In this document: positions 3,001 through 63,722 of the stretch, piece after piece | Layout: each line of letters begins with the position of its first letter | Position numbering within the stretch: the stretch's first letter is position 1 | DNA from: Mizuhopecten yessoensis | Lineage: Eukaryota | Direction of reading: 5' to 3' | Assembly: GCF_002113885.1 (NCBI RefSeq) | Contig: NW_018408484.1 | Location: forward strand, 40,799 to 104,798 | Length of the DNA stretch: 64,000 bases | The notes under the pieces: model-generated | Databases searched by the model: none | What the model saw: the letters and a program-made list of their open reading frames with translations, nothing else | Told to the model about the DNA's origin: nothing | Translations under genes and position numbers: made by a program

Positions 3001-5140
3001 CTGAAAGCTAACCGGGCATTATATCGGGACTGACATGTGTGAAAGATTACGGAATGGGAGAGACGGTTAATGATATATACAATACATTGATAGAATAACC
3101 TTTATACAATATAATGGTGATACTGTCGTTCAATTCTTCACTTTTCCCCACATTATTTTAGGGTCTCTGTCCCGCTGCAGGCAAAACACTAGATAGCTCC
3201 ACTGTAAATTTTCGTACATGCATTTACCTCCCCAGCATTTGAAATTCTTACGTTAACCAGGTTGGTTACATCGACAGTAATGATCTGAGGTAAAGGGTTC
3301 GTACACCCAACACACTGCTGATGTTGTTTTTTGTTTATTTCATCTTTTTGCCTTTTTTTCATCTAAAGTCCCGTAAAGTATATGCTTTTTTATCATGACA
3401 TGTTAACATTCTAAACTTTTGTTTATTATTGACTTAACAAATATCTTTCTTATACTTTCGATATGGAATTGTCTGTGTCGTCATTGTAAACGAGAGTCCT
3501 GGAATAGCCTAGCTTCACCAAAATGTTTGCTTCTAACGGTTGTCTCGTGTTAATCAAGGCAGAAGGAATAACTTCAAAATGACGCTGATCCATGGTAATG
3601 CTTATGGAGGAACTAGCAGTGGACATGTACATGTATATGAGGTACACCTTTTCGTATGAGGGATACAGCATGGGAAACGTCAGCAAATATATCAAGTATA
3701 AAGATTGAAAGCGTAATTTAATTCTAGGTACACTCCTATTGCCAAATCTGTCTATAAATGTGACGTCAGGTAAAGCAAGAGAAAACTATTTACAATATTA
3801 CATCAGGTATTACATACATGTGTAAGTAATGTCATTAACATATTATACAAATAGCTATGCCCATCAGCTATTTATTCGTTATTTGATTTGAAGTGATTAC
3901 TTTTTGGTGGTTTGTAATGAAGTTAGTGGTCACTATTGTGGAATGAAGTGTGATCAATAAACGGTCATAACTTTATCATACAACCAAGTATCGTCAAGGT
4001 AACGGTTAACGTCATCCGTACCGCGACAATGTGTAAGTCGTACTGAAAACGTTCAAATCGGCAGGACTGAGTAGATAGCTAGTATACGCTAGCATAGGCA
4101 AAGTTATTACAAACTGTCCATTAAGAATATTTTACTGACAAGAGAATCATGAAAATTACGTATTAAGGCAGGTTTTGTGCATTAGCAATGCAGAACATCG
4201 GCAATAATCGTGACGCCTAGAGAGTCAAATGACTTGATATGATCTATAATTCATGATAACACCGTCGTTATAATTTCCGGAATGTAGAATGATACCTGGA
4301 GTCTAAGCTTTGAGGTTGACTAATTGTTATAGGTTTTTGTACTTTGGTGAATCGGTTTACTACAGAATACTGAAGAAAAAAGAAAAATACAAAAATGCTG
4401 TAAATGGTTATAATTGACAGATTGAATGTCGTGGAAACATAAAAATTATTTATAAGTTAAAAGTTATCATTACATCACACTTGAAATATTGGTTCATATC
4501 TAGTATGCATATGTATACCCAAAATATAGCTTCGAACTCGTATTCAAATGTTTACTCAAAATATTTATTCAAATTCATGTTTTACCTACATTAACGTTAT
4601 ACCCAAAACATTGGTTCACATCGCTCCGCAGTCGCCTCACATTTATAAGAGTATAGACAGCTGTCGTGATGGTCTCGAGTTTGTCATGCATTATAATATC
4701 ACATGGACCTCAAATCTTCAAAGAACATCACATTATACTCGTCTTCAATCTCTCAGATAGATTACGCCGTATTTGTCTTCATTCTGTCCGACACTATCAT
4801 ATAAGGTTCATATCCATTCATATACCTCATTTACGACATCAATCTGTTATGTACATGTCAAAAATGTGTCCGATTGGCAGGAAAACATTACTTCCAGATT
4901 GTATATAAAATTATTTGACCTTAAAACGTTAGGTTTGCTTCAAATCTGTTGTTAAAATCACGTGATTGGTATGTATGAAACTTATTGGTACACTGTAATA
5001 TATCATACTAGTATCAAAGCCAGTATGTTGGATAACGTTGCTTTATGTTTATAGACAATTTGACCCCGTAATATCATGTCATGTTTGTCTCCAAATAGTC
5101 AGATAATGAATGCCTCGAACATGTCGGATAACTAATCTCA

Positions 5141-12800: not shown

Positions 12801-13545
12801 GTAACTATTGGTGGCACTGTTTCATCATCATATCGGGTGTATAACTATTGGTAGTACTGTTACATCATCATATCGGGTGTGTAACTATTGGTAGTGCTGT
12901 TAAATCATCGTATCGGGTGTGTAACTATTGGTAATACTGTTACATCATCATATCGGGTGTATAACTACTGGTAGTACTGTTACATCATCATATCGGGTGT
13001 ATAACTATTGGTAGCACTGTTACATCATCATAATCATATCAGGTGTGTAAGTATTGGTAGTACTGTTAAATCATCGTATCGGGCGTGTAACTATTGGTAG
13101 TGCTGTTAAATCATCGTATCGGGGGTGTAACTATTGGTAGCACTGTTACATCATCATAATCATATCAGGTGTGTAAGTATTGGTAGTACTGTTACACCAT
13201 CATATCGGGTGTGTAACTATTGGAAGTACTGTTACATCATCATATCCGGTGTGTAACTATTGGTGGCACTGGTTCATCATCATACCGGATGTATAACTAT
13301 TTGTGTAGTATATTGTTACATCACCATATCGGGTGTGTAACTACTGGTAGTACTGTTAAATCATCGTATAGGGTGTGTAACTATTGGCGGCACTGTTACA
13401 TCATCATATCAGGTGTGTAACTTTTGGTAGTACTGTTACATCATCATATCGGGGGTGTAACTATTGGTGGCACTGTTTCATCATCATACCGGATGTATAA
13501 CTATTTGTGTAGTATATTGTTACATCACCATATCGGGTTTATAAC
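9878..13545. repeat. 40-bp minisatellite, ~90 copies
   Basis: Unit TACTGTTACATCATCATATCGGGTGTGTAACTATTGGTAG; local 120-bp higher-order blocks around 11500-11990. Confidence 0.97.
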
Positions 13546-13989
13546 ATTTTAAATAAATATTGTTGTCTGGGTATCCAGGAGCCTTCAATTGAAACACTGT
13601 TTTCTAAAAATATTTCAGAAACATTTTTCCTTTCACTTCGTTACTGATAATCACGTTGATTTCGGTTTTAATTTACCTTCCTCTCTTTCAAACCTTTGGC
13701 TGGATGACGTCACATGGACAGCTGCACGCGCTGCATGGATGTGTTTGTGGAGAAGTAAATAGACTATTGATTAACTATCAGGAAGTCAGATTTGGGTCAA
13801 CTATGAACAGTGAAAATAACATAACGTTTTTGTACATTACAGATGATGTATTTACTTAATATTCCATTAAAATGCTGGTCTCGTTTGCACTTAAACTTTA
13901 TTGTGTGGTTTCATGAATGATATTTGAACTGGAATTTTATCTTGATCATTTAAACCAAAAATAAACTCTAATGCTGTTGGATTTGGAAA

Positions 13990-14310
13990 TTTTCTCCTTT
14001 AGATAATATAGACAAAACAGACCACAATTTTTCTCCTTCAGATAATATAGACAAAACATACCACAAGTTTTCTACTTTAGATAATATAGACAAAACATAC
14101 CACAAGTTTTCTCCTTTAGATAATTTAGATAAAACATACCACAAGTTTTCTACTTTAGATAATTCAGACAAAACATACCACAAGTTTTCTACTTTAGATA
14201 ATATTGGCAAATATATCACAACTTTTCTTCTATAGATAATATAGACGAAACTGACCACAAGTTTTCTACTTTAGATAATATAGAGAAAACATACCACAAG
14301 TTTTCTACTT
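13990..14310. repeat. 39-bp minisatellite, ~8 copies
   Basis: Unit TTTAGATAATATAGACAAAACATACCACAAGTTTTCTAC; 13-aa period in minus ORF 13968-14258. Confidence 0.93.
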
Positions 14311-14736: not shown

Positions 14737-14901
14737 GAAGTTGGTTGACCAGTGAGGAGATCAGGAAGGCACGAGCGAGGTGGAAAGCGGCGATGATGAT
14801 GAAGACGACGGACGACGAGGATCTTGTCCTTCCGAACGATAACGGGAGTGGATGGATGATGCAGAAGGATGGAGAGGTTCAACATTTTACACGTTATACG
14901 G
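14737..14901 (+). CDS. internal coding exon (phase 1-1, 165 nt) of a putative secreted anaphylatoxin-like cationic protein; pro-like segment
   Basis: Acceptor TTTTCGTTGAACAG|GA and donor ACGG|GTAGGT; purine/GC-rich codon-like island in AT-rich DNA; reads GSWLTSEEIRKARARWKAAMMMKTTDDEDLVLPNDNGSGWMMQKDGEVQHFTRYT(G); phase matches the 21750 exon. Confidence 0.7.
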
Positions 14902-17505
14902 GTAGGTATCTTAGAAGTTTACACACTATACGGGTGGGTATCTTAGAAGTTTACACGTTATACGGGTGGGTACCTTAGAAGTTTACACGCTATACGGGTG
15001 GGTATCTTAGAAGTTTACACGTTATACGGGTAGGTATCTTAGAAGTTTGCACGCTATACGGGTGGGTATCTTAGAAGTTTACACGTTATACGGGTAGGTA
15101 TCTTAGAAGTGTACACGTTATACGGGTGGTTATCTTAGAAGTTTACACGTTATACGGGTGGGTATCTTAGAAGTTTACACGTTATACGGGTAGGTATCTT
15201 AGAAGTTTACACGTTATACGGGTAGGTATCTTAGAAGTTAACATGTTATACGGGTGGGTATCTTAGAAGTTTACACGTTATATGGGTAGGTATCTTAGAC
15301 GTTTACACGTTATACGGGCAGGTATCTTAAACGTTTACACGTTATACGGCTGGGTATCTTAGAAGTTTACACGTTATACGGCTGGGTATCTTAGAAGTTA
15401 ACACGTTATACGGGCAGGTATCTTAAACGTTTACACGTTATACGGGTAGGTATCTTCGAAGCTAACATGTAATACGGGTAGGTATCTTAGAAGTTAGCAC
15501 ATTATACGGGTAGGTATCGTAGAATTTAACACGTTATACGGGTAGGTATCATAGAAGTTAACACGTTATACGTTTAGGTATCTTCGAAGCTAACATGTTA
15601 TACGGGTGGTTATCTTAGAAGTGTATACGTTATATGGATAGATATCGTAGAATTTAACACGTTATACGGGTAGGTATCTTAGAAGTTTACACGTTAAACG
15701 GGTAGGTATCTTCGAAGTTAACATTGTATACGGGTAGTTATCTTAGAAGTTAACATGTTATACGGGTGGGTATCTTAGAAGTTAACATGGTATACGTGTA
15801 AGTATCTTAGAAGTTTACATGTTGTACGGGTGGGTATCTTAGAAGTTAACACGTTATACGGGTGGGTATCTTAGAAGTTTACACCTTACACGGGTAGGTA
15901 TCTTCGAAGCTAACATGTTATACTGGTAGGTATCTTAGAAGTTAGCACATTATACGGGTAGGTATCGTAGAATTTAACACGTGATACGGGTAGTTATCTG
16001 AGAAGTTAACATGTTATACGGGTAGGTATCTTCGAAGCTAACATGTTATACGGGTAGGTACATTAGAAGTTAATATGTTATACCTGTATGTATCTTAAAA
16101 GTCAACATGTTGTACGGGTATGTATCTTAGAAGTTAACACGTTATACGGGTAGGTATCTGAGAAGTTAACTCGTTATACGGGTGGGTATCTTAGAAGGTA
16201 ACATGCTGTACGGGTAGGTATCTTAGAAGTTTACACGTTATACGGGTGGGTATCTTAGAAGTTTACACGTTATACCGGTAGGTATCCTAGAAGTTTACAC
16301 GTTAAACGGGTGGGTATTTTAGAAGTTAACACGTTATACGGGTGGTTATCTTAGAAGTGTATACGTTATACGGATAGGTATCTTAGAAGTTAACACGCAA
16401 TACGGGTAGGTATCTTAGACGTTTACACGTTATACGGGCAGGTATCTTAAACGTTTACACGTTATACGGGCAGGTATCTTAAACGTTTACACGTTATACG
16501 GCTGGGTATCTTAGAAGTTTATATTTTATACGGGTTGGTATCTTAGAAGTTTACAGGTTATACGGGTGGGTATCTCAGAAGTTTACACGTTATACCGGTA
16601 GGGATCCTAGAAGTTTACACGTTAAACGGGTGGGGATTTTAGAAGTTAACACGTTATACGGGTAGGTATCTGAGAAGTTTACACGTTATACCGGTAGGTA
16701 TCCTAGAAGTTTACACGTTAAATGGGTGGGTATTTTAGAAGTTAACACGTTATACGGGTAGGTATCTGAGAAGTTTACACGTTATACCGGTAGGTGTCCT
16801 AGAAGTTTACACGTTAAACGGGTTGGTATTTTAGAAGTTAACCCCTTATACGGGTGGTTATCTTAGGAGTGTATACGTTATATGGATAGATATCTTAGAA
16901 GGTAACATGTTATACGGGTAGGGATCTTAGAAGTTTATATTTTATACGGGTTGGTATCTTAGAAGTTTACATGTTATACGGGTAGGTATCTGAGAAGTTA
17001 ACTCGTTATACGGGTGGGTATCTTATAAGTTTAAACGTTATACGGGTAGGTATCTGAGAAGTTAACTCGTGATACGGGTGGGTATCTTAGACGTTTACAC
17101 GTTATACGGCTGGGTATCTTAGAAGTTTACACTGTATACGGGTAGGTATCTTAGAAGCGTACATGTTGTTCGGGTAGGTATCTTAGAAGTTAACATGTTA
17201 CACGGGTAGGTATCTTAGAAGTTTAGACTTTATACGGTTAGGTATCTTAGAAGTTAACATGTTATACGGGTAGGTATCTTAGAAGTTTATATTTTATACG
17301 GGTTGGTATCTTAGAAGTTAACATGGTATACGGGTAGGTATCTGAGAAGTTAACATGTTATACAGGTAGGTATCTTAGAAGTTTATACTTCATACGGATA
17401 GGTATAGTAGAAGTTAACACGTTATACAGGTAGGTATCTTAGAAGCTTACACGTTATACGGATAGGTATAGTAGAAGTTAACATTTTATACAGGTAGGTA
17501 TCTTA
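14886..17505 (+). repeat. 32-bp minisatellite, ~80 copies, each copy containing the exon end and splice donor
   Basis: Unit TTTACACGTTATACGG|GTAGGTATCTTAGAAG; the first copy overlaps the last 16 nt of exon 14737-14901. Confidence 0.95.
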
Positions 17506-18084
17506 ACATCCGTTCGGTACATCGCGTTATATCGGTAAAAGTTCGTATTTACTGTCCAAATACTGTAATAAGGGGCAGGCATGGATGCGGGTTGGCAATT
17601 GTGTAAGGCTTTCAGGGATTAACGTCGCACACATAGTCCAGCCATAACTCTATAGGTAATAACACTGTTTCTCTGTTGGTACCTAAAATATCAAGCTAGT
17701 GCATGTCACATGAAATAATTAGGAAAATGACATGTTGCATATAAACACTTAATACCGTATCTCTTTTTCCCTTGATTAACTAAAATAGCTGAAAAGCTAT
17801 CGTATGCAATTTGGACACAAGTCGGTAAGGAGAAAGGGAAATTATTTTACATGTATATTGCTGTATACATAAAATTCTAAGGATTTAAACATCGTCATAT
17901 GTCATTTTCATTCTGATTGATGAGGAGCCAAGCTTACTATCACTGGTTTTACACAAAACTTTACAGAAAACACCAAAAAAAATACCAAAATGTAAACAAA
18001 ACAATAATTCGAACTAAAAATCAATAAAACTAAGGGAAAATATTAACAACGAAAAAAAAAGACCCTTGACAAAATACAAGGAGA

Positions 18085-19110
18085 ATAAGACAAGGGGTTC
18101 CGGAAGGGAAGGCGTCTTGTGCTTCATCACCGACACCCGCTATGTAAGTCTAGGTCAAATCGAAGTAATGTCAGGTCATCATATCGAGAGTTTGGATAGT
18201 GGCAAGAAAATCACAAGGCACACTAATATACCCACAAGGAAATAGCCTAAACTACATATCTGGAAACCCAGTGTTGTAAGATTATCCGTCAGCAGTCGAC
18301 CTCTATCATGGAATCCTGATATTCGAAGCAAGATCTTGAATGTCCAATCAACTGCGACATGTAAACACCGTAACAATCGGGGGCAGGATGTTACTATCAG
18401 GAAAGGGAAAGTTTACGATCGGAAAACCGAAATCGCCTCGCCTATTTTGAAGTAAAGATCGAGGAAAACGGCAGATGTAGAAAAAGTTTCTCGTGTCGTT
18501 AACATCAAGCTTAGTAGGGTATATACGATGAACGTTTTCAATCAATTTCTAGTTATTTAAAGACAGCATATCGGAGATATATATGAACTGAAATCGAAGG
18601 ACTTGGCTAGATTTTGGTTACCAGTCCTGATAAGCTCATTAATAAAATCAGCTCCATATGAAAACAAAACAAAATCGGCTAGAATATGTGCACTGTTTGT
18701 TCTGATAGGAGTGTGGCAAGCTTGCCACTGAGCTCAACAAGGATGTGGTCAACCTTGAACTCTCAGTATATTTCAATTTGGCCTCTGTCGTACTTTTTTA
18801 CAAAATTTGCTGGAAAAGTTTTCCAACCATATATTGATGTCTTCGTTCGCCTTTTTTTTTGCAAAAGAAATTTATGCAACTTTTTTAGTTTGTAGCGTCA
18901 CAATGCGACTGTTCCCCTTATGTAATAGTGAACGGATGGAAAAAACTAGCATGTCTTTTTTACTGGCATATGTCTCTTGTATACGAAATGCTATGTCGCT
19001 AAATAAAGGTCGTTTTCACAAGATTACTCAAGGAATGTAACAAAACTATACATCTTACTTTCACGAAGCAAACCTCAAAGAGTTGGACAAATTACAATGC
19101 CTTTTTGTCG
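18085..19110 (-). mobile_element. decayed Penelope-like retroelement (RT C-terminal region and 3' tail)
   Basis: Minus-strand remnants FSYGADFINELI, RRGDFGFPIVNFPFPDSNI, GVYMSQLI..SR.C and FHDRGRLLTDNL match the invertebrate PLE RT motifs YDKRDDFNFPIVNFPFLSSNIP..YGVYISQLIRY; many stops and frameshifts. Confidence 0.8.
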
Positions 19111-19330
19111 TTTTTCATGAAACTCGAAGGATTGAAATGAGATGTCATCAACACCTACCAGATAAAGACATGTCCAGAACTAACAAAATGTCATCACCAT
19201 GCCCTCAAGTCCACACATCTGAAAGTTCAAACCAAATGTCGCCCTCATGTCCCCTTTTCCATAATTAAATCTATCAGATCAAATGAAACGTCACCATCAT
19301 GCACTCCATTTAATAAATAAATCTACCAGA

Positions 19331-19907
19331 CCATCACACCCTCAAGTCCATAAATGAGTCTATCAGGCCATACAAACTTCACCATCACTCCCTCAAGTCC
19401 ATAAATGAGTCTATCAGGCCATACAAACTTCACCATCACTCCCTCAAGTCCATAAATGTGTCTATCAGACCATACAAACTTAACCATCACACCCTCAAGT
19501 CCATGAATGAGTCTATCAGATCATACAAACTTCACCATCACGCCCTCAAGTCCATAAATGTGTCTATCAGACCATACAAACTGCACCATCACACCCTCAA
19601 GTGCATAAATGAGTCTATCAGATCATACAAACTTCACCATCACCCCCTCAAGTCCATAAACGACTCTATCAGACCATACAAACTCCCCCATCACACCCTC
19701 AAGTCAATAAATGAGTCTATCAGGCCATACAAACTTCACCATCACGCCCTCAAGTCCATAAATGTGTCTATCAGACCATACAAACTGCACCATCACACCC
19801 TCAAGTACATAAATGAGTCTATCAGCCCATACAAACTTCACCATCACCCCCTCAAGTCCATAAACGACTCTATCAGACCATACAAACTTCACCATCACAC
19901 CCTCAAG
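19331..19907. repeat. 51-bp minisatellite, ~11 copies, with decayed precursor copies at 19140-19330
   Basis: Unit CCATCACACCCTCAAGTCCATAAATGAGTCTATCAGACCATACAAACTTCA; 17-aa period in ORF 19458. Confidence 0.95.
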
Positions 19908-20619
19908 TTCTCGTTGAGATCTGATAGACTCATGTATGGACTTTGAGGCACAGTGTGATGCAATGTATATTCGGAAAGATGGCGACATGTTTGCATTCGT
20001 TACGGCAAGTAGGTCAACTGTCAAAGCTAGTAATACCATTCAGAAATTAAAATAAATAATGACAACTTACTAATTACTTTGTGAGACGTCCTTTCAGTCG
20101 AATGTCACTCAACAATCTCGGGGGAATAGATCGGTACAGGCATTTAACATAGTCTATATTTAAGAGTGTTTAGGTTTTCTAACGGAAGGATAATTCGACA
20201 ATTACATACGTAGTTACATTGTTATACGTACACTGTTAAAACACAAGTGAACGTTTTGAGTCATCGCAATATTGAGCCAACTTTGTTTTGAGATTTTTTA
20301 CATTCTTAATTTTGAGAGTCCAGACTGTTTGTAAAAAGTTAATGAGACGGGTAGGTTGGCGCTACGGTTACGCGGTATTAAACGTACTAGTGTATAGTGA
20401 ACGCGCCGGTCCCGGTATCACCTGTACTGTGGGTGGGAAATATTGTTAGTCTTCTACCTTACTAATTGGTTTATAATTGCAGTTTCCTTGCCTCGCTATC
20501 TTACTGGTTAATGAAAAAAAATCTTGATTCGACCTAATATACAACATCGTGATTTGAAAATGGCATCACACCTCCGTCACAATTAGGTCATTATTCCTTG
20601 TAACAGTCTTTGGCTATGA

Positions 20620-21380
20620 CCAGTAGACTAGATACATCGCAGCGCTGCCACGCTATATACCAGCAGGCTATGCTTTAGAGGTACTATTATCACTGAGAAT
20701 TGAGATAGGCAATACTGTCAGGCTGTGATCAGGAGTACATATTATCGCCACAGAACTACCACAGGTAGCATTGTCAGGCTATTGGTACATGTTCTGTCAC
20801 CATTTTTAGGTCACCTGAGCTTTAGCTCAAGTGACCTATTGCTATCCGTTTTCGTCCGTCGTCGTCCGTCGTCCGTCGTCCGTCGTCCGTNATTATTCCT
20901 GAGGGAGGCATAGAAGGTATCATTAGGCGAAGTTCTGTAGTAATATCAACAAGCTACGAACACTATTACTAGACTATGGGCATAGTATTAATGCAATATC
21001 ATCGAACTAGGTGTGATAAGGTCGGGAACTGTAACAAGATGATGATGAAGTCGGCACTATGGTTAACCTATAGCATCACCTCGTTATACGTAACATAACT
21101 AGGTTATGGGTACAATCAATGTTTTATATTACCAGTCGGAGGGTTTTATTATCAAAGCTTTGTGTATTTTAACCACGGAATGAGTGATATCCCCCGCCGA
21201 AAGGTACTATCAACAAGCTAGGGGTACTTGAACCAAGTTATGGGTGATTCCAACAACCATAGCGTACTATCATCAAGCTATGAGTTCTGTAACTAACATA
21301 GAGTAATGTTATAAGGTTATTGAAACCGCCAGCACGTTATGTGTAAATTAAACATCCTATGCTTGCTGTCATCATGCTAT
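20620..21380. repeat. highly decayed ~21-bp minisatellite
   Basis: Recurring degenerate GGTACTATCA(A/T)CAAGCTATG motif, interrupted by the MITE end at 20803. Confidence 0.5.
20803..20890 (+). mobile_element. terminus of a non-autonomous Helentron-associated (HINE/pearl-like) element, cut at a contig join
   Basis: TTTTTAGGTCACCTGAGC-TTTA-GCTCAAGTGACCTA hairpin followed by a CGTC-type microsatellite ending at a single N. Confidence 0.8.
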
Positions 21381-21749
21381 GAATGACGTCATCTGTGTTG
21401 TCACCCAACAGTACCCCGTGTCATATATATTTACATTGGTTATAACATGTAACCTTACGTTTGACAGACTATATAAGGATATAAGTTATTAGGCTTACAT
21501 TTAACACTGCTCTTTCTCTATGTGTTATGACGATTTTAACAATTTTACTTCTAAGGTAAGATTTGAAGAGGGATATGATGATTTTTTTAGCAAAAGTGTT
21601 ATATTCTAGATTAGGTATTCATTCTTAATGTTTTTGCTATTTTAGACATTTCTATCCAAAACAAAAGCATCTAGTGTCATTATCCGTATCAGCATATTAT
21701 TTAAAACCTAAACTGCCTTTGGAAATATAATTATTCTATTTGTTTACAG

Positions 21750-22099
21750 GTTCAGCATCGAGATTACATACGTCGACGTGCTGCCGACTGGGCAGAGTCT
21801 CGGCTACACGAGGGAAGCCGTGTCACAGCGGCTACTACAGCAACCAGTTAAATGTGAAGCTCCGACGATACCGTTTATATCGCTATAAACAGAGATTAAA
21901 GCTGTTACGGAGTCGTTATGGTATCAATTACAGACAAAATAGCATGGATAAGTACCAAAAGTGTGCTCTTCGTCGCCAGAGTCAATTCCAAAAATGTTGT
22001 AATGCTGTGTATTACCATAAGAAACGACGACATCGAAACTGGCGCATGTATGCTAGATACCGGAACTCTCTCTCTAAACGGAAGGGCCGTCGACACTGA
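21750..22099 (+). CDS. terminal exon: Arg/Lys/Tyr-rich anaphylatoxin-like (six-Cys) domain
   Basis: Acceptor TTCTATTTGTTTACAG|GT (phase 1); 116-codon intact ORF with CC-x2-G-x9-C-x46-C-x7-F-x2-CC; about 34 R+K versus one D by hand count; TGA followed by AATAAA. Confidence 0.8.
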
Positions 22100-22159
22100 G
22101 GATTATGGGTAATAACATTTTTAAATGCAATTTAATTGTTCTCATTCAGGAGTCAGTAA

Positions 22160-22165
22160 AATAAA
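22160..22165 (+). promoter_or_regulatory. candidate polyadenylation signal
   Basis: AATAAA about 60 nt after the stop, followed by a GT-rich tract (TGTCTCGTTGTTGTT). Confidence 0.55.
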
Positions 22166-22319
22166 TGTCTCGTTGTTGTTATTTCATAAAAGGCGTCATG
22201 TTATTTGTTCTTAAATACTCGTCATCATCAATACAACTAATACAATATTTATGTTTACACCTTACTTGTTCAAGGTTGATAAGTATGCACCCAACTTGAA
22301 TAGCAAATATACAAGCAAT

Positions 22320-22570
22320 AACGAACACAAAGATGTCTAACTGACAGCCATCTTGTTTTTTCTGATCAGTTTCAAACTGATACATGCACAACTATGTACC
22401 AAGGAAATCCAACATATGAAATACGAGAAAGATCTGTAAAATACCCATTGAGAAATACCGATAACGTACTGTCGAAATCAAAGATGGCTGTCAGGCGACG
22501 GTCTTTAACTTTCCCAGTCTCAAAATGAAACATGCACAATAATAGACCAAGATAAACCAACATATGAAAG
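22320..22570. mobile_element. two decayed ~160-bp internal repeat units of a Helentron-type non-autonomous element
   Basis: AAGATG..GACAGCCATCTTG palindromic core and repeated CATGCACAA..ACCAAG..CCAACATATGAAA. Confidence 0.45.
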
Positions 22571-22926: not shown

Positions 22927-23762
22927 ATGTCCTACGTGGAGAAACTCTGTCAGATCACATCAGCTTTACCTCGGTTAATAATTACTGATGTCCTAAGGGG
23001 AGAAACTCTGTCAGATCACATCTGCTTTACCTCTGTTTTTATAACTGATGTCCTATGTGGAGAAACTCTGTCAGATCACAGCAGCTTTACCTCTGTTAAT
23101 AATAACTGATGTCCTAAGGGGGGAAACTCTGTCAGATCACAGCAGCTTTACCTCTGTTAATAATAACTGATGTCCTAAGTGGAGAAACTCTGTCAGATCC
23201 CATCTGCTTTACCTCTGTTTTTATAACTGATGTCCTACGTGGAGAAGCTCTGTCAGATCACATCTGCTTTCCCTCTGTTATTATAACTGATGACCTAAGG
23301 GGAGAAACTCTGTCAGATAACATCAGCTTTACCTCTGTTTTTATAACTGATGTCCTACGTGGAGAAACTCTGGCAGATCACATCAGCTTTCCCTCTGTTA
23401 TTATAACTGATGTACTAAGGGGGGAAACTCTGTCAGATCACATCTGCTTTCCCTCTGTTATTATAACTGATGTCCTCAGGGGAGAAACTCTGTCAGATAA
23501 CATCAGCTTTACCTCTGTTTTTATAACTGATGTCCTACGTGGAGAAACTCTGGCAGATCACATCAGCTTTAGCTCTGTTATTATAACTGATGACCTAAGG
23601 GGAGAAACTCTGTCAGATAACATCAGCTTTACCTCTCTTATTATAACTGATGTCCTCAGGGGAGAAACTCTGTCAGATAACATCAGCTTTACCTCTGTTT
23701 TTATAACTAAAGTCCTAAGGGGAGAAACTCTGTCAGATCACATCAGCTTTACCTCTGTTTTT
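22927..23762. repeat. 60-bp minisatellite, ~14 copies
   Basis: Unit TTATAACTGATGTCCTAAGGGGAGAAACTCTGTCAGATCACATCAGCTTTACCTCTGTT(A/T). Confidence 0.96.
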
Positions 23763-40619: not shown

Positions 40620-41230
40620 TAACGATTGGTGGATACTTTGAACGGACCCGTTATTTTGAAAGTTAAACAGAAGGCGTGGATATAGCAAGTGAAAGTCTTA
40701 GAGTCAGACCAAGATACCTGGGATTCTGTGGATTTCAAGCGATACGTGTGATAACAAACATGGGCGATATACACCTTCAGTGATGCTAGCTATTCCGTCG
40801 AGGACATTCTGACGATTTTCAGATTCCTTTGTAATGTGTTAGACAGGCTTGTCCAACACGATTTATAAGTCAAAGCATTAAAATGAAGGTTTCTCAACAC
40901 GTCATTAACATACCTTGGACATGTAGTATCGGAAGACGGGATTGCCACCTATCCAAACATAGGATCGGATATGAAAAAATTGCATTCAGTTGCAACAAAA
41001 GGTGGTTTGTCAATGACTTCGTCAAAACAGCACAACGCAGAAATAAACTAGACTTTCCACGGGAAAGGAACGGTCTTTACAGTCCAAGAGGAGCGCCGAG
41101 TAAAACGTGGGTTATATTCTACAAGATGTATTTGATATAAAACACTGATTAGTGCTCTCGTACTTAATCATGCTGATTACCATCCATTGTGCTTGCATGC
41201 TAATGCTTTCAAAGCTCGTGGTACGAGGCT
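40620..41230 (+). mobile_element. decayed Ty3/Gypsy pol fragment (RT to RNase H linker)
   Basis: NVLDRLVQHDL*VKA, YLGHVVSEDGIATYP and IKTLISALVLNHADYHPLCLHANA resemble the Gypsy motifs VLxRLxxxGL, YLGHxVSxxGIxxDP and LKxxLxSAPVLxxPDxxxPFxLxTDAS. Confidence 0.75.
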
Positions 41231-55208: not shown

Positions 55209-57703
55209 ACAAGGGAACCTTGAACATGTTCGGAAAAGAGTAAAAAAGGGTGAAATCGCAAAAACCCAATGAATTTTAGGAATTTTAACGTTTGGCTTCC
55301 AATATTTTACAAAAATAGTAATAAAATAATGCTTTCACAGATGTTTTGTTTTAACACTTTTAAGATTATGTTTTTTACAATAGAATATTAAAAATACACC
55401 GTATCGCTACGACAAATATAAGCCCCGCTTAATGAGAAATAAAGCACTGTACACAACGTTAAAATGAGGAAAATGGCGTTTGATCTAGTTTGTGGCTAGT
55501 GATCGTTGGAAGAGAAGTGGGCTACTCGGTTGTTCTAGGGCAGCCTTATCCATGGATGAATTGGCGGTTGGAGTAAAATTATGCAACTCATTCGGTTGTA
55601 TTGGAATAATGACCATTGGAGCAAGATTTTATCAAGCATACAACACTAGATGTTAAAGACAACATATAAGGTGGTTATACTTATAATACTGGTTTTCTTC
55701 GGGTCACCGACACTGTATTGAATTATTGTGTAGAATCTGTAACATAAGATGTATTCCCAAGTCGAGCCAATGACCGCTCATCTAGACAACCGCCGACTCG
55801 TTTATATATTCTATCTATTGTCCATCGCCCTACATTATAACAAACAGCATAGCTACTTGATGTTTCCCTCGGTTGTTTCGACATGATATTAACATTTGCA
55901 TTCTTGATAAGAACATGTGAACAATGGACAGTCTGTTGAAAGTCAGAGACCACAAGACGTTGACCTGGATCTGTACTGTGTCAAAGTGAATGAGGCAAGG
56001 CAATAATGGTGACCGCCGTAACAGCCGTCGAACAATGAATATGTACGTTGAAACAGCACAAAATAAAGATAAAAATTGTTGATAACTTGCAGTAAAATCA
56101 GAGAGCATATGTATATAACCCTTGCAGATTCGGAGAAATGTAAATAGGCAGCAGCTAGTTTGGGTCCCTACAAAATTGGGTTTTATTCGACAGTGACTTC
56201 AGTTAACTAACGGGACTTTGAAGAAACCTAAGAGTATCTATACTGTCCTCATAGCACCTCTAAGGACTTCTGTAATTTCTTTTCTATCAAGCATATGACC
56301 CTAGCTGTTATAGTATTCAGAACCCTCAACAAGACATAATCAGGTAAAAGTACTGATGCTGAAGCGCATTTATGATTATAATGACAGCTGGCACTCAGGT
56401 AAGTGGAATAATGAAGGCCAATGACATTTCTCATATTGTGATAACCGGCGACTTTAATGCAAATGCCCTAGTAGACCACCATTCGTCCCACTTACGCGAT
56501 ATACTTGTTTCCTTTAATCTAACTCAGATTGTTGAATCAACTTTTTATACATCTGTATAGTCTGTACTAATATTAATGCGCGTGACCTTTTCACCTCCTG
56601 GCCCACAACCCCCTCCACTGTTTACAAACATTGCGTAGGGACTATTTATATACTGAACACATAACATCAAGTGAATCAATCAATAACCGCATGTATAAAA
56701 TTTATTAAAATTGTATTTTAATTGTTTATTATACATGACTTCAGACAGGGCAAGCTTGTTGGAACATACTGAACATAAATAACCAAACACATGATTGAAT
56801 TGAAATTGGCCGTTTTATTTGTATAAACGACAATTGAAAATATTTCCAAAACATAAACCAATATGGAACATGTACATAAAATAGTTTGGTCCTAGGTGGG
56901 GATAAAACCGCCACTATGGTATCTGATAAATGTCACATTTTGTACATGCTCAGAAACCATCCCCCACCCGCAGCCCTGACTGAACATATTAAAATTTAAA
57001 GTAAAATTTAAAATAAAATAAAACAACATTTTGGCAAAATGTATCACACATGTATGATAGCATCAAAATATAAAACACTTTCAACAAAAACTAATCGTTG
57101 TTATAACGTGAGTTCTCCAATCACGTAGAACATATAAGTCAGTATTTATTCCAATGATGCTGGCTTTGAACCAGCCATAGAGATTTGAATGTCCTTAAAC
57201 TGTAAAACATGTGCTTTTGATTTGTTTAGGGCGATGTCCCCTACCCGTAAAAAAGCATGAAAGGCAAGTAGGTACATGGCTTTTAGCATACAGGCTTGAT
57301 AGTGGGAAACAGCTGTATGAGGTAATGACTGAACAAGTTTTTGTAAAATTGATGGTGTAATAGGTAACCTGGAGTCTGGACGGTATGAACCCCTTTGGAT
57401 TGCAGTTACCAACTTACCAAATGGTTGACGTAGCAAATTGTTGCTGGTGTAGATGTGCAATAAAATACACTAATGTGCCTACTGTGGTAGGCAAACATGT
57501 TTGGAGATGTGATGTGCTGACTACANTTATCCCCCACCCGCAGCCCTGACTGAACATATTAAAATTTAAAATAAAATAAAACAACATTTTGGCAAAATGT
57601 ATCACACATGTATGATAGCATCAAAATATAAAACACTTTCAACAAAAACTAATCGTTGTTATAACGTGAGTTCTCCAATCACGTAGAACATATAAGTCAG
57701 TAT

Positions 57704-58047
57704 TTATTCCAATGATGCTGGCTTTGAACCAGCCATAGAGATTTGAATGTCCTTAAACTGTAAAACATGTGCTTTTGATTTGTTTAGGGCGATGTCCCCT
57801 ACCCGTAAAAAAGCATGAAAGGCAAGTAGGTACATGGCTTTTAGCATACAGGCTTGATAGTGGGAAACAGCTGTATGAGGTAATGACTGAACAAGTTTTT
57901 GTAAAATTGATGGTGTAATAGGTAACCTGGAGTCTGGACGGTATGAACCCCTTTGGATTGCAGTTACCAACTTTTTAACCACAAAAGATTGGGTAGGGTC
58001 AGTGTGACCAGCCAGGCGGTTGATATAACCAATGGCTGCAATGTACG
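57704..58047 (-). pseudogene. tyrosine recombinase N-terminal half (truncated); near-duplicate at 57146-57525
   Basis: YIAAIGYINRLAGHTDPTQSFVVKKL..RLPIT..AFHAFLRVGD has the first catalytic Arg; stops before the HxxR and Tyr motifs. Confidence 0.85.
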
Positions 58048-58824
58048 NNNNNNNNNNNNNNNNNNNNNNNNNNNNNNNNNNNNNNNNNNNNNNNNNNNNN
58101 NNNNNNNNNNNNNNNNNNNNNNNNNNNNNNNNNNNNNNNNNNNNNNNNNNNNNNNNNNNNNNNNNNNNNNNNNNNNNNNNNNNNNNNNNNNNNNNNNNNN
58201 NNNNNNNNNNNNNNNNNNNNNNNNNNNNNNNNNNNNNNNNNNNNNNNNNNNNNNNNNNNNNNNNNNNNNNNNNNNNNNNNNNNNNNNNNNNNNNNNNNNN
58301 NNNNNNNNNNNNNNNNNNNNNNNNNNNNNNNNNNNNNNNNNNNNNNNNNNNNNNNNNNNNNNNNNNNNNNNNNNNNNNNNNNNNNNNNNNNNNNNNNNNN
58401 NNNNNNNNNNNNNNNNNNNNNNNNNNNNNNNNNNNNNNNNNNNNNNNNNNNNNNNNNNNNNNNNNNNNNNNNNNNNNNNNNNNNNNNNNNNNNNNNNNNN
58501 NNNNNNNNNNNNNNNNNNNNNNNNNNNNNNNNNNNNNNNNNNNNNNNNNNNNNNNNNNNNNNNNNNNNNNNNNNNNNNNNNNNNNNNNNNNNNNNNNNNN
58601 NNNNNNNNNNNNNNNNNNNNNNNNNNNNNNNNNNNNNNNNNNNNNNNNNNNNNNNNNNNNNNNNNNNNNNNNNNNNNNNNNNNNNNNNNNNNNNNNNNNN
58701 NNNNNNNNNNNNNNNNNNNNNNNNNNNNNNNNNNNNNNNNNNNNNNNNNNNNNNNNNNNNNNNNNNNNNNNNNNNNNNNNNNNNNNNNNNNNNNNNNNNN
58801 NNNNNNNNNNNNNNNNNNNNNNNN
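58048..58824. other. assembly gap (N run)
   Basis: About 777 N. Confidence 0.99.
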
Positions 58825-60801
58825 TTGGAGAACTCACGTTTTAACAACGATTAGTTTTTGTTGAAAGTGTTTTATATTTTGATGCTATCATACATGTGTG
58901 ATACATTTTGCCAAAATGTTGTTTTATTTTATTTTAGATTTTAATTTTAATTTTAATATGTTCAGTCAGGGCTGCGGGTGGGGGATGGTTTCTGAGCATG
59001 TACAAAATGTGACATTTATCAGATACCATAGTGGCGGTTTTATCCCCACCTAGGACCAAACTATTTTATGTACATGTTCCATATTGGTTTATGTTTTGGA
59101 AATATTTTCAATTGTCGTTTATACAAATTAAACGGCCAATTTCAATTCAATCATGTGTTTGGTTATTTATGTTCAGTTTGGTCCAACAAGCTTGCCCTGT
59201 CTGAAGTCATGTATAATAAACAATTAAAATACAATTTTAATAAATTTTATACATGCGGTTATTGATTGATTCACTTGATGTTATGTGTTCAGTATATAAA
59301 TAGTCCCTACGCAATGTTTGTAAACAGTGGAGGGGGTTGTGGGTCAGGAGGTGAAAAGGTCACGCGCATTGATCTGGTTATATAAACTGCTTACGCAGCA
59401 TCAGCTTACTACAGCCGCTGCAGACACCGCCTACAACCACAAAGATGGACACTGGTCAAGGTCAGTTTTGTTGTTTAAAGTACAATCATTTTTGACCCGC
59501 CTCCTCCCCATCTTCCTCCATCTGGTATTGCGGTACTTACCTGTTAATTATTATCCAGGTGGCGGTTTTATCCCCACCTAGGACCAAACTATTTTATGTA
59601 CATGTTCCATATTGGTTTATGTTTTGGAAACATTTTCAATTGTCGTTTATACAAATTAAACGGCCAATTTCAATTCAATCATATGTTTGGTTATTTATGT
59701 TCAGTTTGGTCCAACAAGCTTGCCCTGTCTGAAGTCATGTATAATAAAAAAAATGTAACCTTATCAATAAATGTTTTGTTGGAGAAAGCTTCCTTGACCA
59801 ACCGGTTAGATACCATTGTCAAATATACTGTTCTTTTAATATTTCAAAGCCAGTGCAGCAGGTGTTTAAGCGAAACGTTTGGCTTTTTGACCTAGGAAAT
59901 TACGATTTATTTAGGGAAAAACTAAGCTCAGTTAACTGGAATTTATTGAGTGATTTTGATGATATTAATGATGCTGTCAAAAAATTCTTATATATTTTAC
60001 TTACTATTGCTAAATCTTGCATTCCGAATAAAAAAATAACCATCAGATCTAATGAACCCCCTTGGCTATCAAACGAAATAAGGAGATTAATTCGTAAACG
60101 CAAGCGCGCTCATAAAAAAAGCCAAGCGTTCCCTTACTGAACCTCACTGGGCAAAGTTTCGTCGACTTCGTAACAAATGTGTTAACACAATCAAGCACGC
60201 CAAATTAACATATTTTTCACCATTGCTTCATAATAATAGCGCTGTCTCAGATGACTTTGAGAAAGCTTGCTTATTTAATGACTTCGTTTTTGCCCAGTCT
60301 ACAGTTGTTGACTACAATGTAAATCTCCCTAACATTAACGACGAATGGAATCATTCCTTATCTGATATTAACATCACAGCTAATGATGTCAGAGATGCTA
60401 TTCTTACCACTGATTGTTCTAAGGCCATTGGTCCTGACCTGGTAAATCCTCGTCTTCTTAAAGAATCGGTAAATATCATATAAAATCTGAACCCACATCA
60501 TAAATGTAATTAAATTAACTTTGTATTTAATTGTTGTTGTTTTTAAACATCAATTTTTATATGCAACTTCTCAAAAAAAGGATCAAACTAGTCTTCTTGT
60601 ATCATCCACAAGAGATCATGAGATATGCCAAGGGGTTCGGAGATTAAGAAATATTTTTAACAGGTCAATTAGATCTGGGGTATTCCCATCTGAATGGAAG
60701 TTTGCTAACGTCACCCCTGTGCATAAAAAAGATAACAAGTCTATATTAACTAATTACAGACCTATATCACTGCTATTGATCGTTGGTAAATTAATGGAAA
60801 A

Positions 60802-62058
60802 ATGTGTCTTCAAATATGTCTACATTCTTTTGCACACTCACACCCTCCATCTGGTTTTAACCACGGTGACTCACCAACAAATCAACTTCTTGCGATCATT
60901 CATGATATATATTTAGCCTTAGACAATGGTAAGGAAATACGTATGGTCTTTTGTGATATTAGTAAAGCTTTCGATCGTGTTTGGCATAAAGGCTTTCTTT
61001 GTAAATTATCCAGCTATGGGATTCGTAATTCGCTATCAGTTTGGTTTGAAAATTATCCTTCCGATCGAAAGCAGAGAGTTGTCATCAATGGTAAAAATTC
61101 AAATTGGTTAAATGTTAAGGCTGGTGTTCCACCGGGCTCAATTCTTGGACCTCTTTTATTTCTGATATATATAAATGACATTGTTAAAGATATACAAGCT
61201 AAAATAAAGTTATTCGCTGATGACACCTCTCTTTACGTAACTGTTGATATTCCTAGAGTCAAGGCAGATATTCTTAATAGTGACCTTAATACAGTTCATA
61301 ACTGGTCGCAAAGATGGTTAGTAAATTTTAACCCTTCCAAAACAGAAACCCTGCTCATTAGTAGAAAAACCATTAAACCTTTTCATCCTCCCTTAAATAT
61401 AGATAATAATAACATCTCTGAAGTTAATACAAACAAGCATTTAGGTATTTTTCCCTCTGGAAATGGTCATTGGAATGAACACATAAGTTATTTGATATCT
61501 AAGATTTCACTTAAAATGAATATCTTACGTAAAATTAAATTCTCTTTGGACAGGTATAGTCTCCAAACTATGTACTACACTCTTATTCGACCTGTATTAG
61601 ACTATGGAGATATCTTATGGGACTGCCTTACTAAAGCTCAATCTGAATTATTAGAAAATCTTCAATTAGAAGCAGCACGCATAGTCACTGGCGACACTAG
61701 ACTCACAAGTAGAATTAAACTGTATATTGAAACAGGTTGGCTTCCCCTCGAGGAAAGACGTAAACAGCACAAGCTTATTCTTTTCCACAAAATGGTTCAT
61801 GGTCTGGCTCCTCAATATCTTCTAGATATTCTACCTCAGCGTAACCGTAATTACCAAAACCATGATACTCGCACGGGAAATAATTTCCGTCCACTAGTTA
61901 GTCATACTAGTCTCTATAATAAATCTTTTTTGCCATCTGTCATCAGTATCTGGAACTCCTTGCCTGACTATGTCAAGAACGACCCTTCGATTTATAAACT
62001 TAAAACCTATCTACGCAAGCCCGCTCACAAAATTCAAATTTTCTACACTGTACTTTAA
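60802..62058 (+). CDS. LINE reverse transcriptase ORF fragment (non-functional)
   Basis: 418-aa open frame with RT motifs including FADD; frameshifted relative to the flanking ORF2 pieces. Confidence 0.9.
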   Translation: MCLQICLHSFAHSHPPSGFNHGDSPTNQLLAIIHDIYLALDNGKEIRMVFCDISKAFDRVWHKGFLCKLSSYGIRNSLSVWFENYPSDRKQRVVINGKNSNWLNVKAGVPPGSILGPLLFLIYINDIVKDIQAKIKLFADDTSLYVTVDIPRVKADILNSDLNTVHNWSQRWLVNFNPSKTETLLISRKTIKPFHPPLNIDNNNISEVNTNKHLGIFPSGNGHWNEHISYLISKISLKMNILRKIKFSLDRYSLQTMYYTLIRPVLDYGDILWDCLTKAQSELLENLQLEAARIVTGDTRLTSRIKLYIETGWLPLEERRKQHKLILFHKMVHGLAPQYLLDILPQRNRNYQNHDTRTGNNFRPLVSHTSLYNKSFLPSVISIWNSLPDYVKNDPSIYKLKTYLRKPAHKIQIFYTVL

Positions 62059-63722
62059 TGGTACCAGACTGGGACAGATACATCATGCTAGATTAAGAAT
62101 GGAGTGTAGTTCCCTTAAGTTTTATCTATACCAGAGAAATTTAATTGATAGTCCTCTGTGTTCTTGCATGCAAGCAAATGAAACCAATGTACATTATATA
62201 TTACATTGTTGTCTTTTTTCTCAACTACGTTTACGTACAATTAACGAAATCAACCATCCACTCTCAACTGATTTACTTTTGTTCGGGAATGATGAGCTTA
62301 CAGATGACGAAAGTACTTTAATTTTTTCATCTGTACAAAACTCCATCATCCATTCTAAAAGATTTGACGAAGTTCTATTAATTATACAACGATCCTTTGT
62401 TTCACATCACTTATTTCCTCTCCTTCTATTCTTATTGGCACGGGCATCTATAATTCCCTCCCCCTTACTATGCCATCATGCCTTAAATTAATGAAATAAA
62501 TTCTCGGAAACGGATTTATATAAGTTATTTCAACTTGTTTCCGGATCCCATTCCTCTGTACTTTGTATGGTATGTGATGTAATGCAACTTAATTTGGAAT
62601 GAATAACGTTTATATTAATGACGGTGATTGTAGACACTCTTGTAACAATGGGAACACCAGACTGGTGTCATAACCATTAGAACTGCTAATATCGCCGTCA
62701 ATGAGCTCAATGGGTGTCACTTTGGTAATTAATGTCATCGTCTGACAGTCAAAGATGGTGACAGTGGAACTATGTCGGTTTCAGGGAAGCCAAGATGGTG
62801 TCTGTTTCAGTGTTACGATCGGAGAGCGCGAGGGCAATGACTGTTGGAACTTATGTCACAGTCCTAGAGGGCATAGTCAATCTGATGGTAAGGATCACAG
62901 ACATTATAATACTCTGTGTATGTGACCTAGTCAGCCAGTGTATCATTTTCCACTTCACGTTAGATCGCGATATACGCTGACAATTGTGATTATGGGAGTA
63001 ACGAACAGCCTTTGACAACATGTATATAATCTTGAAATCAATTTCCCTGATAACAATGTGTATTACATGAGTTGTAATTAACTGTCCAATGACTATGATT
63101 CACATACAAATTAGTATGGTTGCTTCGGTACATTTGGCTCATCGCAGTAACCCCATCTGAAACATGCAATCCTCATCTAAAAAAGGAAGAAACAATTAAG
63201 CAAAGCCTTATAGCGGATCGTTAATTCAAGAGATCCGTCCGTCTGCCTGACGTTCGCTCGACACAGCACAGCAGTCGTATAGGGTTTCTGCTTAGTGTAT
63301 AGAAGCCTGCTAATGTTCACACTTAGCATGTGTAAGACTCGTGGACTAGCAGTAGGTTACGACTGGGGAAAAGGTCAACGTCTCCAAGTACTGGTCAAGT
63401 TTTATCGGAGCGACACAAATCAATTACACGGATAAGATGTAGACAATCTGACATTTAAAAGTTGTTTGTGAAACTCAAAAGTGTAGCCTTGTTTTCTGTG
63501 ATTAAGTTACTGGCCGCCGCCGAGCGAAGCAGTGTGACTGGTGGCCAGCCTCGACTGGAGCGCCCCATAATTGAACATCATCAGCACAACTTCGGTCCAT
63601 CCATTACCATCTCTATGAGAGGTGAGAGCAGGCACAGAATATTACGCAGTGCCTAGTCAATAATAGAATATGCTGAATCGACAAAAAAATATTTCTACAC
63701 CGAGATATCCCTTGGTATGGAT

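Follow-up and report, generated by a model that had tools for sequence, protein, structure and literature searches.

What kind of protein is encoded by two exons that lie about 6.85 kb apart in the genome of the scallop Mizuhopecten yessoensis? The stretch of DNA analysed here, hereafter referred to as the window, comprises 64,000 nucleotides of contig NW_018408484.1 (assembly GCF_002113885.1, forward-strand positions 40,799 to 104,798); it has a G+C content of 36.7% and is eukaryotic. A preliminary description, made from the sequence of this window, had joined the two exons into a gene for a stand-alone, highly cationic protein related to the anaphylatoxins, and had suggested that it serves as an antimicrobial protein, a receptor ligand or an adhesive. 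We arrive at another classification. With moderate confidence, which refers to all parts of the explanation taken together, we interpret the two exons as the second and third of three exons in a single-copy gene for a secreted protein, belonging to an unnamed and undescribed family of molluscs, annelids and a nemertean, with a putative role as an extracellular factor. The gene is laid out in the window as follows.

Positions 13739 to 13754, forward strand: first coding exon of the NCBI model, 16 nt, located as a unique pattern match; it encodes MCLWR plus one base and has the donor A/GTAAAT.

Positions 14737 to 14901, forward strand: coding exon 2, 165 nt, phase 1 to 1, with the product (G)SWLTSEEIRKARARWKAAMMMKTTDDEDLVLPNDNGSGWMMQKDGEVQHFTRYT(G).

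Positions 14902 to 21749, forward strand: intron 2, 6,848 nt, GT...AG, with a minisatellite at its 5' end.

Positions 21750 to 22099, forward strand: coding part of the last exon, which encodes the six-cysteine domain and a polybasic tail in 115 full codons (21752 to 22096), then TGA.

Positions 22100 to 22191, forward strand: 3' untranslated region with AATAAA at 22160 to 22165; transcript contigs stop at 22162 to 22191.

The splice sites of these exons are canonical, and the single reading frame that was claimed for them held up in all its elements. Exon 2, which opens with GAAGTTGG, is preceded by ...ttgaacag and ends in ...TATACGG/GTAGGT, and the last exon is preceded by ...tttacag. The phase is 1 at both exon ends and the frame is open across the join (...DDEDLVLPNDNGSGWMMQKDGEVQHFTRYT-(G)-SASRLHTSTCC...), running on to the TGA at 22097-22099 and followed by the only AATAAA near the gene, at 22160. 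The acidic patch that had been noted, TTDDEDLVLPNDN, is indeed encoded by exon 2, as is the conserved acidic motif DDEDL...GSG. The 115-residue product of the last exon also has the composition (R23, K11, Y12, D1) and the cysteine positions (10, 11, 24, 71, 82, 83) that were first read from it, giving the frame CC-x2-G-x9-C-x46-C-x7-F-x2-CC.

Transcript evidence was collected for positions 16401-22400 of the window. Three studies each contribute a set of transcript-sized contigs (X1, X2, X7) in which one contig covers 21745 to 22162-22191, and 5' of 21745 all three run on with the same 30 letters, which occur once in the window, at 14867-14896. After these letters the window reads TACGG to 14901 and then GT. 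The joining of 14901 to 21750 is thus confirmed in RNA-derived assemblies, and the same exon join is carried by the NCBI protein XP_021368449.1. The kind of each sequencing run is a guessed label only; we took the RNA-like runs to be RNA because intron 2 has almost zero depth in them, apart from a repeat at 20801-20890. The last exon is present in 14 RNA-like runs from five studies and is missing from three sister runs, and the contig word depth over it is low (6-27). The repeat itself is about 90 bp long; a hairpin-like GGTCACCTGAGC...TCAAGTGACC precedes a (CGTCGTC/CGTCCGT)n tract, which extends to a single N. Every RNA run covers the repeat at very high depth (up to 23,000), with nearly all reads fitting only in part and continuing into many different sequences, and it looks like a dispersed repeat that is carried by many transcripts.

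The junction has an unusual sequence context. A minisatellite of 82 copies of a 32-bp unit (14886-17505) begins within the last 16 nt of exon 2, such that the exon 2 donor is located in its first copy and each unit repeats the context of the exon-intron junction. The array contains 41 further donor-like sites of the form ACGGGT(A/G)GGTA, and the transcript contigs use only the first donor. In Ylistrum balloti, an array of 19 copies of a 28-bp unit with the same core (GTTATACGGGTA) is found at the same exon end (L003 25661-26188), and no array is found there in Argopecten.

Which protein does this junction produce? The product of the last exon is 100% identical to residues 62-176 of XP_021368449.1 (P0001, 176 residues), listed at NCBI as 'uncharacterized protein LOC110460066' of Mizuhopecten yessoensis. 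The gene is thus already annotated. Homologs were recovered with an exhaustive HMMER search and two profile searches, subject to word-sharing and length filters, and these yielded about 24 proteins with profile E-values from 1e-12 to 1e-74. All are named 'uncharacterized' and none has a precomputed Pfam domain. They come from three scallops (Mizuhopecten, Argopecten, Ylistrum), the gastropods Littorina, Babylonia and Batillaria, the chiton Liolophura, the annelids Capitella, Owenia, Paralvinella and Ridgeia and the nemertean Tubulanus, with several additional members from unnamed transcript or metagenome contigs.

The frame CC-x2-G-x9-C, a loop of 40-47 residues and C-x7/8-F-x2-CC were counted by regular expression in 23 of the 24 proteins, the remaining one being truncated at its N-terminus. 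Likewise, in an alignment of 23 rows the glycine, the phenylalanine and four of the cysteines are invariant, and the first CC pair is absent only from the N-truncated protein (P0013). The 'long basic loop insertion' of the preliminary description is therefore not a scallop insertion: the whole family has the 40-47 residue segment, and the loop is ancestral to it. The full-length proteins share a layout of signal peptide, variable acidic region, cysteine frame and basic tail.

Gene structure and constraint are conserved along with the frame. The genes of Ylistrum, Argopecten, Liolophura and Littorina have three coding exons each, and in these four, as in the window, a phase-1 intron is located a few codons before the first CC pair. 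The exon homologous to exon 2 has the same phases in Ylistrum and Argopecten. Among the three scallops, the ratio of nonsynonymous to synonymous substitution rates (dN/dS) ranges from 0.04 to 0.08 for exon 3 and from 0.05 to 0.09 for exon 2; the leader exon gives 0.08-0.29. The last exon occurs once in the M. yessoensis genome, where a search found no paralogs, and the gene is single-copy. The motif (T/S)DDEDL(T/V)...GSG recurs in one of the unnamed members as well as in the scallops, gastropods and chiton. Glycosaminoglycans are usually attached where Ser-Gly comes after an acidic cluster, and we mention the motif as a lead to a putative attachment site, suggested by its letters.

The N-terminus is where the annotated protein departs from its relatives. 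XP_021368449.1 starts with MCLWR, contains no hydrophobic segment and has an isoelectric point (pI) of 10.8. The orthologs from Argopecten irradians and Ylistrum balloti (P0002 and P0007; LOC132551292 in the latter) are 205 residues each and open with a hydrophobic leader, M..DTWLMCVCWL..LA.LRMVNTSRP..., which is a signal peptide; every full-length relative has such a leader. The only strong match to the ortholog leader in the M. yessoensis genome (92% identical, E 5e-17) is located at 2706-2813 of an unplaced contig of 6,003 bp (G000:C76061). The exon at 2706-2811 of this contig encodes MLYDTWLMCVCWLYVLASLRMVNTSRPAYHDSGSK plus one G, followed by GTAAGC, which is a phase-1 donor (G/GTAAGC) as in the orthologs. 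The mean Kyte-Doolittle value of its hydrophobic core is 2.1. The exon ends in ...AAAG, and its G together with the first two bases of exon 2 would give GGA (Gly). The true exon 1 should accordingly be located outside the window on C76061, giving a predicted secreted product of about 205 residues that has the family layout. Given this first exon, the preliminary picture of a small, stand-alone, very cationic six-cysteine protein from a spliced gene is upheld and extended to a secreted one.

The NCBI first exon at 13739-13754, the product of which has no signal peptide, probably serves as a stop-gap in the annotation, or else represents an alternative 5' exon; the error at the 5' end of the NCBI model stems from the location of the first exon on an unplaced contig. 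One could instead take the model at its word. The gene would then encode an intracellular or nuclear polybasic protein starting MCLWRR, for example a nucleic-acid binder, in agreement with the composition of the annotated protein, with the canonical donor after 13754 and with the X1 and X7 contigs, which reach 300-456 nt beyond exon 2. However, the same genome contains an intact and conserved signal-peptide exon with the correct phase-1 donor, all full-length relatives have the leader, and six invariant cysteines suggest disulfides. Furthermore, the context of the ATG at 13739 is weak, and an out-of-frame ATG 4 nt upstream overlaps it. We regard an intracellular protein as very unlikely. A perfect palindrome, TGACGTCA, which resembles a cAMP response element (CRE), is located at 13705-13712, 27 nt upstream of the ATG of the NCBI model, and might mark an alternative promoter of a leaderless isoform.

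Contig C76061 may belong just upstream of the window, because the scaffold there (C5157) is N for nearly 10 kb directly upstream and mostly N beyond, and intron 1 is 7.2 kb long in Argopecten and 15.4 kb long in Ylistrum. The 3' third of C76061 (3881-6003) is a satellite that shares about 80% identity with one at the beginning of C5157 (799-2335), which would fit a location of both pieces in the same region. Three other candidates were rejected. The reading RPTFTDRFR*TGSW just upstream of 14737 was considered as a decayed ancestral exon, and the ortholog loci have an intron at exactly that position. A tblastn match of the leader at 4826-4882 of the window was attributed to chance, and a protamine-like nuclear protein was dropped when the signal-peptide exon was discovered; a literature search on basic proteins of scallop sperm returned nothing useful.

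Is the secreted product an anaphylatoxin? The name of the domain in question is ANATO (PF01821), the module of C3a, C4a, C5a and fibulin-1/2. The canonical ANATO of the scallop (G000:C404) has the spacing CC-x2-G-x9-C-x12-C-x3-F-x2-CC. The N-terminal half of this frame, CC-x2-G-x9-C, recurs with exact spacing in the family. In place of the C-terminal half, with about 12 residues and then C-x3-F-x2-CC, all members have the long loop and C-x7/8-F-x2-CC. Neither is the domain released from a thioester-containing complement protein, being encoded instead by a stand-alone gene of about 205 codons and three exons in four species besides M. yessoensis.

The searches gave a similar result. At E <= 10, PF01821 did not match the protein, 12 of its relatives or eight half-domain fragments, whereas the canonical scallop ANATO, used as a positive control (L008), reached 24.5 bits (E 5e-5) by hmmscan, above the Pfam gathering threshold of 21.4 bits. 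The control locus (G000:C404:42361-42465; L008 1501-1605) was the sole six-frame Pfam ANATO match reported in the M. yessoensis genome search, with 23.7 bits, and this genome-wide search with PF01821 did not return the window. A comparison by hhalign aligned 16 columns at a probability of 3.3% (P = 0.013), with the first half-frame in exact register. Sequence and profile searches of PDB chains gave no match. The fold searches (Foldseek against PDB, VIA-wide, a second look with VIA, and Atlas) recovered only generic helical matches, with no C3a, C5a or fibulin chain among the matches listed, and Atlas feature searches found nothing. In Atlas, the first-listed neighbor of the low-confidence model of an annelid member (P0011) was a chordate fibulin-1, a protein that carries ANATO modules, with a template-modelling (TM) score of 0.41 over 64 residues.

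A model of P0001:50-176 obtained with AlphaFold2 and the family alignment has a mean predicted local distance difference test (pLDDT) score of 77.5, with helices at 21-31, 38-63, 72-86 and 88-126; a model from the single sequence was poor (pLDDT 49). The modelled helices carry the CC pair, the third cysteine is located at a helix start, and the fourth cysteine and the second CC pair are in the C-terminal helices.

One hypothesis is that the protein is a divergent 'free anaphylatoxin' with the ANATO fold, the loop of which has grown into a helical hairpin, and which signals through G protein-coupled receptors (GPCRs) like C3aR and C5aR independently of complement. The exact spacing of the first half-frame, the retained F-x2-CC, its register in hhalign, the fibulin-1 neighbor and the placement of the cysteines on predicted helices all speak for this idea. 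The silence of PF01821 next to a control that scores, the low hhalign probability over so few columns, the blank PDB searches and the altered spacings in the second half of the frame speak against it, and we consider it improbable. We put the chance of remote homology to ANATO equally low. Membership in the ANATO family, as first proposed, is not supported, and the likeness is a resemblance of the cysteine framework.

How might a secreted protein of this kind function? After removal of the signal peptide, the product would consist of the conserved acidic N-terminal part with DDEDL...GSG, followed by a predicted helical C-terminal domain with six invariant cysteines and a polybasic tail, the domain and tail together carrying a charge of about +32. 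It could form a disulfide-stabilized, helical extracellular factor, the basic helices of which would bind polyanions such as sulfated glycans, and it may act as a conserved signaling ligand or a matrix-bound factor, as opposed to an effector that evolves fast. We infer the ligand or matrix role from the deep conservation, the single copy, the strong constraint, the low depth and the charge.

A host-defense role would make other use of the charge. Here, processing would free a polycationic, amphipathic helical domain from the anionic N-terminal piece that masks it, and the mature form would then disrupt microbial membranes. The net charge of the domain and tail in scallops (+32 to +37, pI > 11), the long predicted helices, the acidic stretch that precedes the cysteine domain and the secretion predicted from the C76061 leader are all consistent with such a protein. 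However, no dibasic site separates the acidic part from the cysteine domain in scallops (...FTRYTGSASRLHTSTCC), and the acidic part is as constrained as the cysteine domain itself; the term 'pro-segment' therefore fits it poorly. In invertebrates, antimicrobial proteins and adhesive or shell proteins are usually abundant and fast-evolving, restricted to particular lineages and encoded by several gene copies. No such pattern was found for the scallop gene by copy search, dN/dS, contig depth or family range: it is single-copy, has a dN/dS of 0.04-0.09 over exons 2 and 3, is of low contig depth and is conserved across three phyla. We judge a host-defense role to be unlikely.

The 12 tyrosines and 34 arginines and lysines in 115 residues could also suggest a structural protein, such as a byssal adhesive of the 3,4-dihydroxyphenylalanine (DOPA) type or a component of the shell matrix, and scallops make both byssus and shell. 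Against this, the protein contains no internal sequence repeats of the tandem Tyr/Lys-rich type or any other, its orthologs extend beyond byssus- and shell-forming taxa to shell-less annelids and a nemertean, and the richness in tyrosine is confined to the scallops and the chiton. The strong constraint, the single copy and the low depth fit such a role as poorly as they fit an antimicrobial one, and we find it highly improbable.

Several observations weigh against our preferred interpretation of the gene as one for a secreted factor of an unnamed family. The join of exon 1 to exon 2 was not seen for M. yessoensis in the reads aligned to intron 2 and exon 3, exon 1 being located on another contig, and the NCBI model takes another first exon that encodes no signal peptide. 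In one raw RNA run (X24), the last exon is not covered by any read. No named homolog was found, and the taxonomic range of the family may be wider than the one recovered here. Finally, the cysteine domain is basic in all members, and its net charge lies between +3 and +14 for most of them and between +19 and +23 for the scallops. The charge of the scallop proteins is two to three times that of other members, having risen at the base of the scallops; this could reflect a new role specific to the lineage, for example a microbicidal one.

A bolder hypothesis is that the family branched off the anaphylatoxin fold in ancient times as a stand-alone protein. It would represent a secreted helical cytokine of lophotrochozoans, locked by disulfides, that would signal through GPCRs without complement, and which in molluscs might carry a glycosaminoglycan on DDEDL...GSG and act as a self-neutralizing proteoglycan ligand. 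We offer it as a long shot.

The locus as a whole is unusually rich in tandem repeats, with four more minisatellites around and within the gene, at 13002-13545, 13990-14310, 19330-19908 and 22927-23498 (periods of 40, 39, 51 and 60 bp). Farther downstream, open frames of a retrotransposon without long terminal repeats are found at 59853-62491, with a reverse transcriptase match (RVT_1, E 5e-20) at 60802-62058. At 57146-58837, a run of 777 N (58048-58824) lies between near-duplicate pieces of open reading frames (…VTAIQRGSYRPDSRLPITPSILQKLV…), which suggests a repeated mobile-element fragment on either side of the gap.

Our findings define a conserved family of secreted proteins in molluscs, annelids and a nemertean that is unnamed, lacks a Pfam model and goes unmentioned in the literature searched, where queries on LOC110460066, XP_021368449, CAPTEDRAFT_224946 and stand-alone anaphylatoxin-like proteins of molluscs returned nothing relevant. 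They also correct a public gene model that hides the secretory nature of the protein. Deep conservation, a single copy, strong purifying selection and a fixed six-cysteine frame, the last kept with its glycine and phenylalanine in the homologs, are features of an important extracellular factor. If the resemblance to ANATO reflects homology, the family would bear on the origin of anaphylatoxin-type ligands; otherwise, we have here a clear example of convergence between cysteine frameworks.

In comparison with what is already known, the gene is the same as LOC110460066, and exons 2 and 3 are identical to those of XP_021368449.1, whereas the NCBI model has a first exon of 5 residues and the Argopecten and Ylistrum orthologs, like C76061, have a leader exon of 35 residues. 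The mussel-type DOPA adhesives resemble the scallop and chiton members in their high content of Tyr and Lys/Arg, and differ from them in the tandem peptide repeats; the family has instead a conserved six-cysteine helical domain and orthologs in non-adhesive, shell-less taxa. Cationic host-defense peptides with an anionic propiece, a layout known from the cathelicidins, share the order of signal peptide, acidic segment and highly cationic C-terminal part. The scallop protein differs from these in that it has no dibasic site before the domain, is encoded by a single-copy gene that is deeply conserved under strong purifying selection, and has a much larger cationic part (106 residues). The ANATO module differs in its spacing, with 12 residues between the third and fourth cysteines in the canonical scallop module against 40-47 in the family, and x3 against x7/8 from the fourth cysteine to the phenylalanine. 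Furthermore, the family has no hidden Markov model, profile or listed fold match to it, and its gene stands alone rather than encoding a module of a thioester protein or fibulin. Common to both are six cysteines in the order CC...C...C...CC, the identical spacing of CC-x2-G-x9-C, the F-x2-CC and a basic and, for the family, predicted helical character. The protein is best filed under a new family of secreted proteins that have a cysteine framework with an ANATO-like frame, and not as a new anaphylatoxin.

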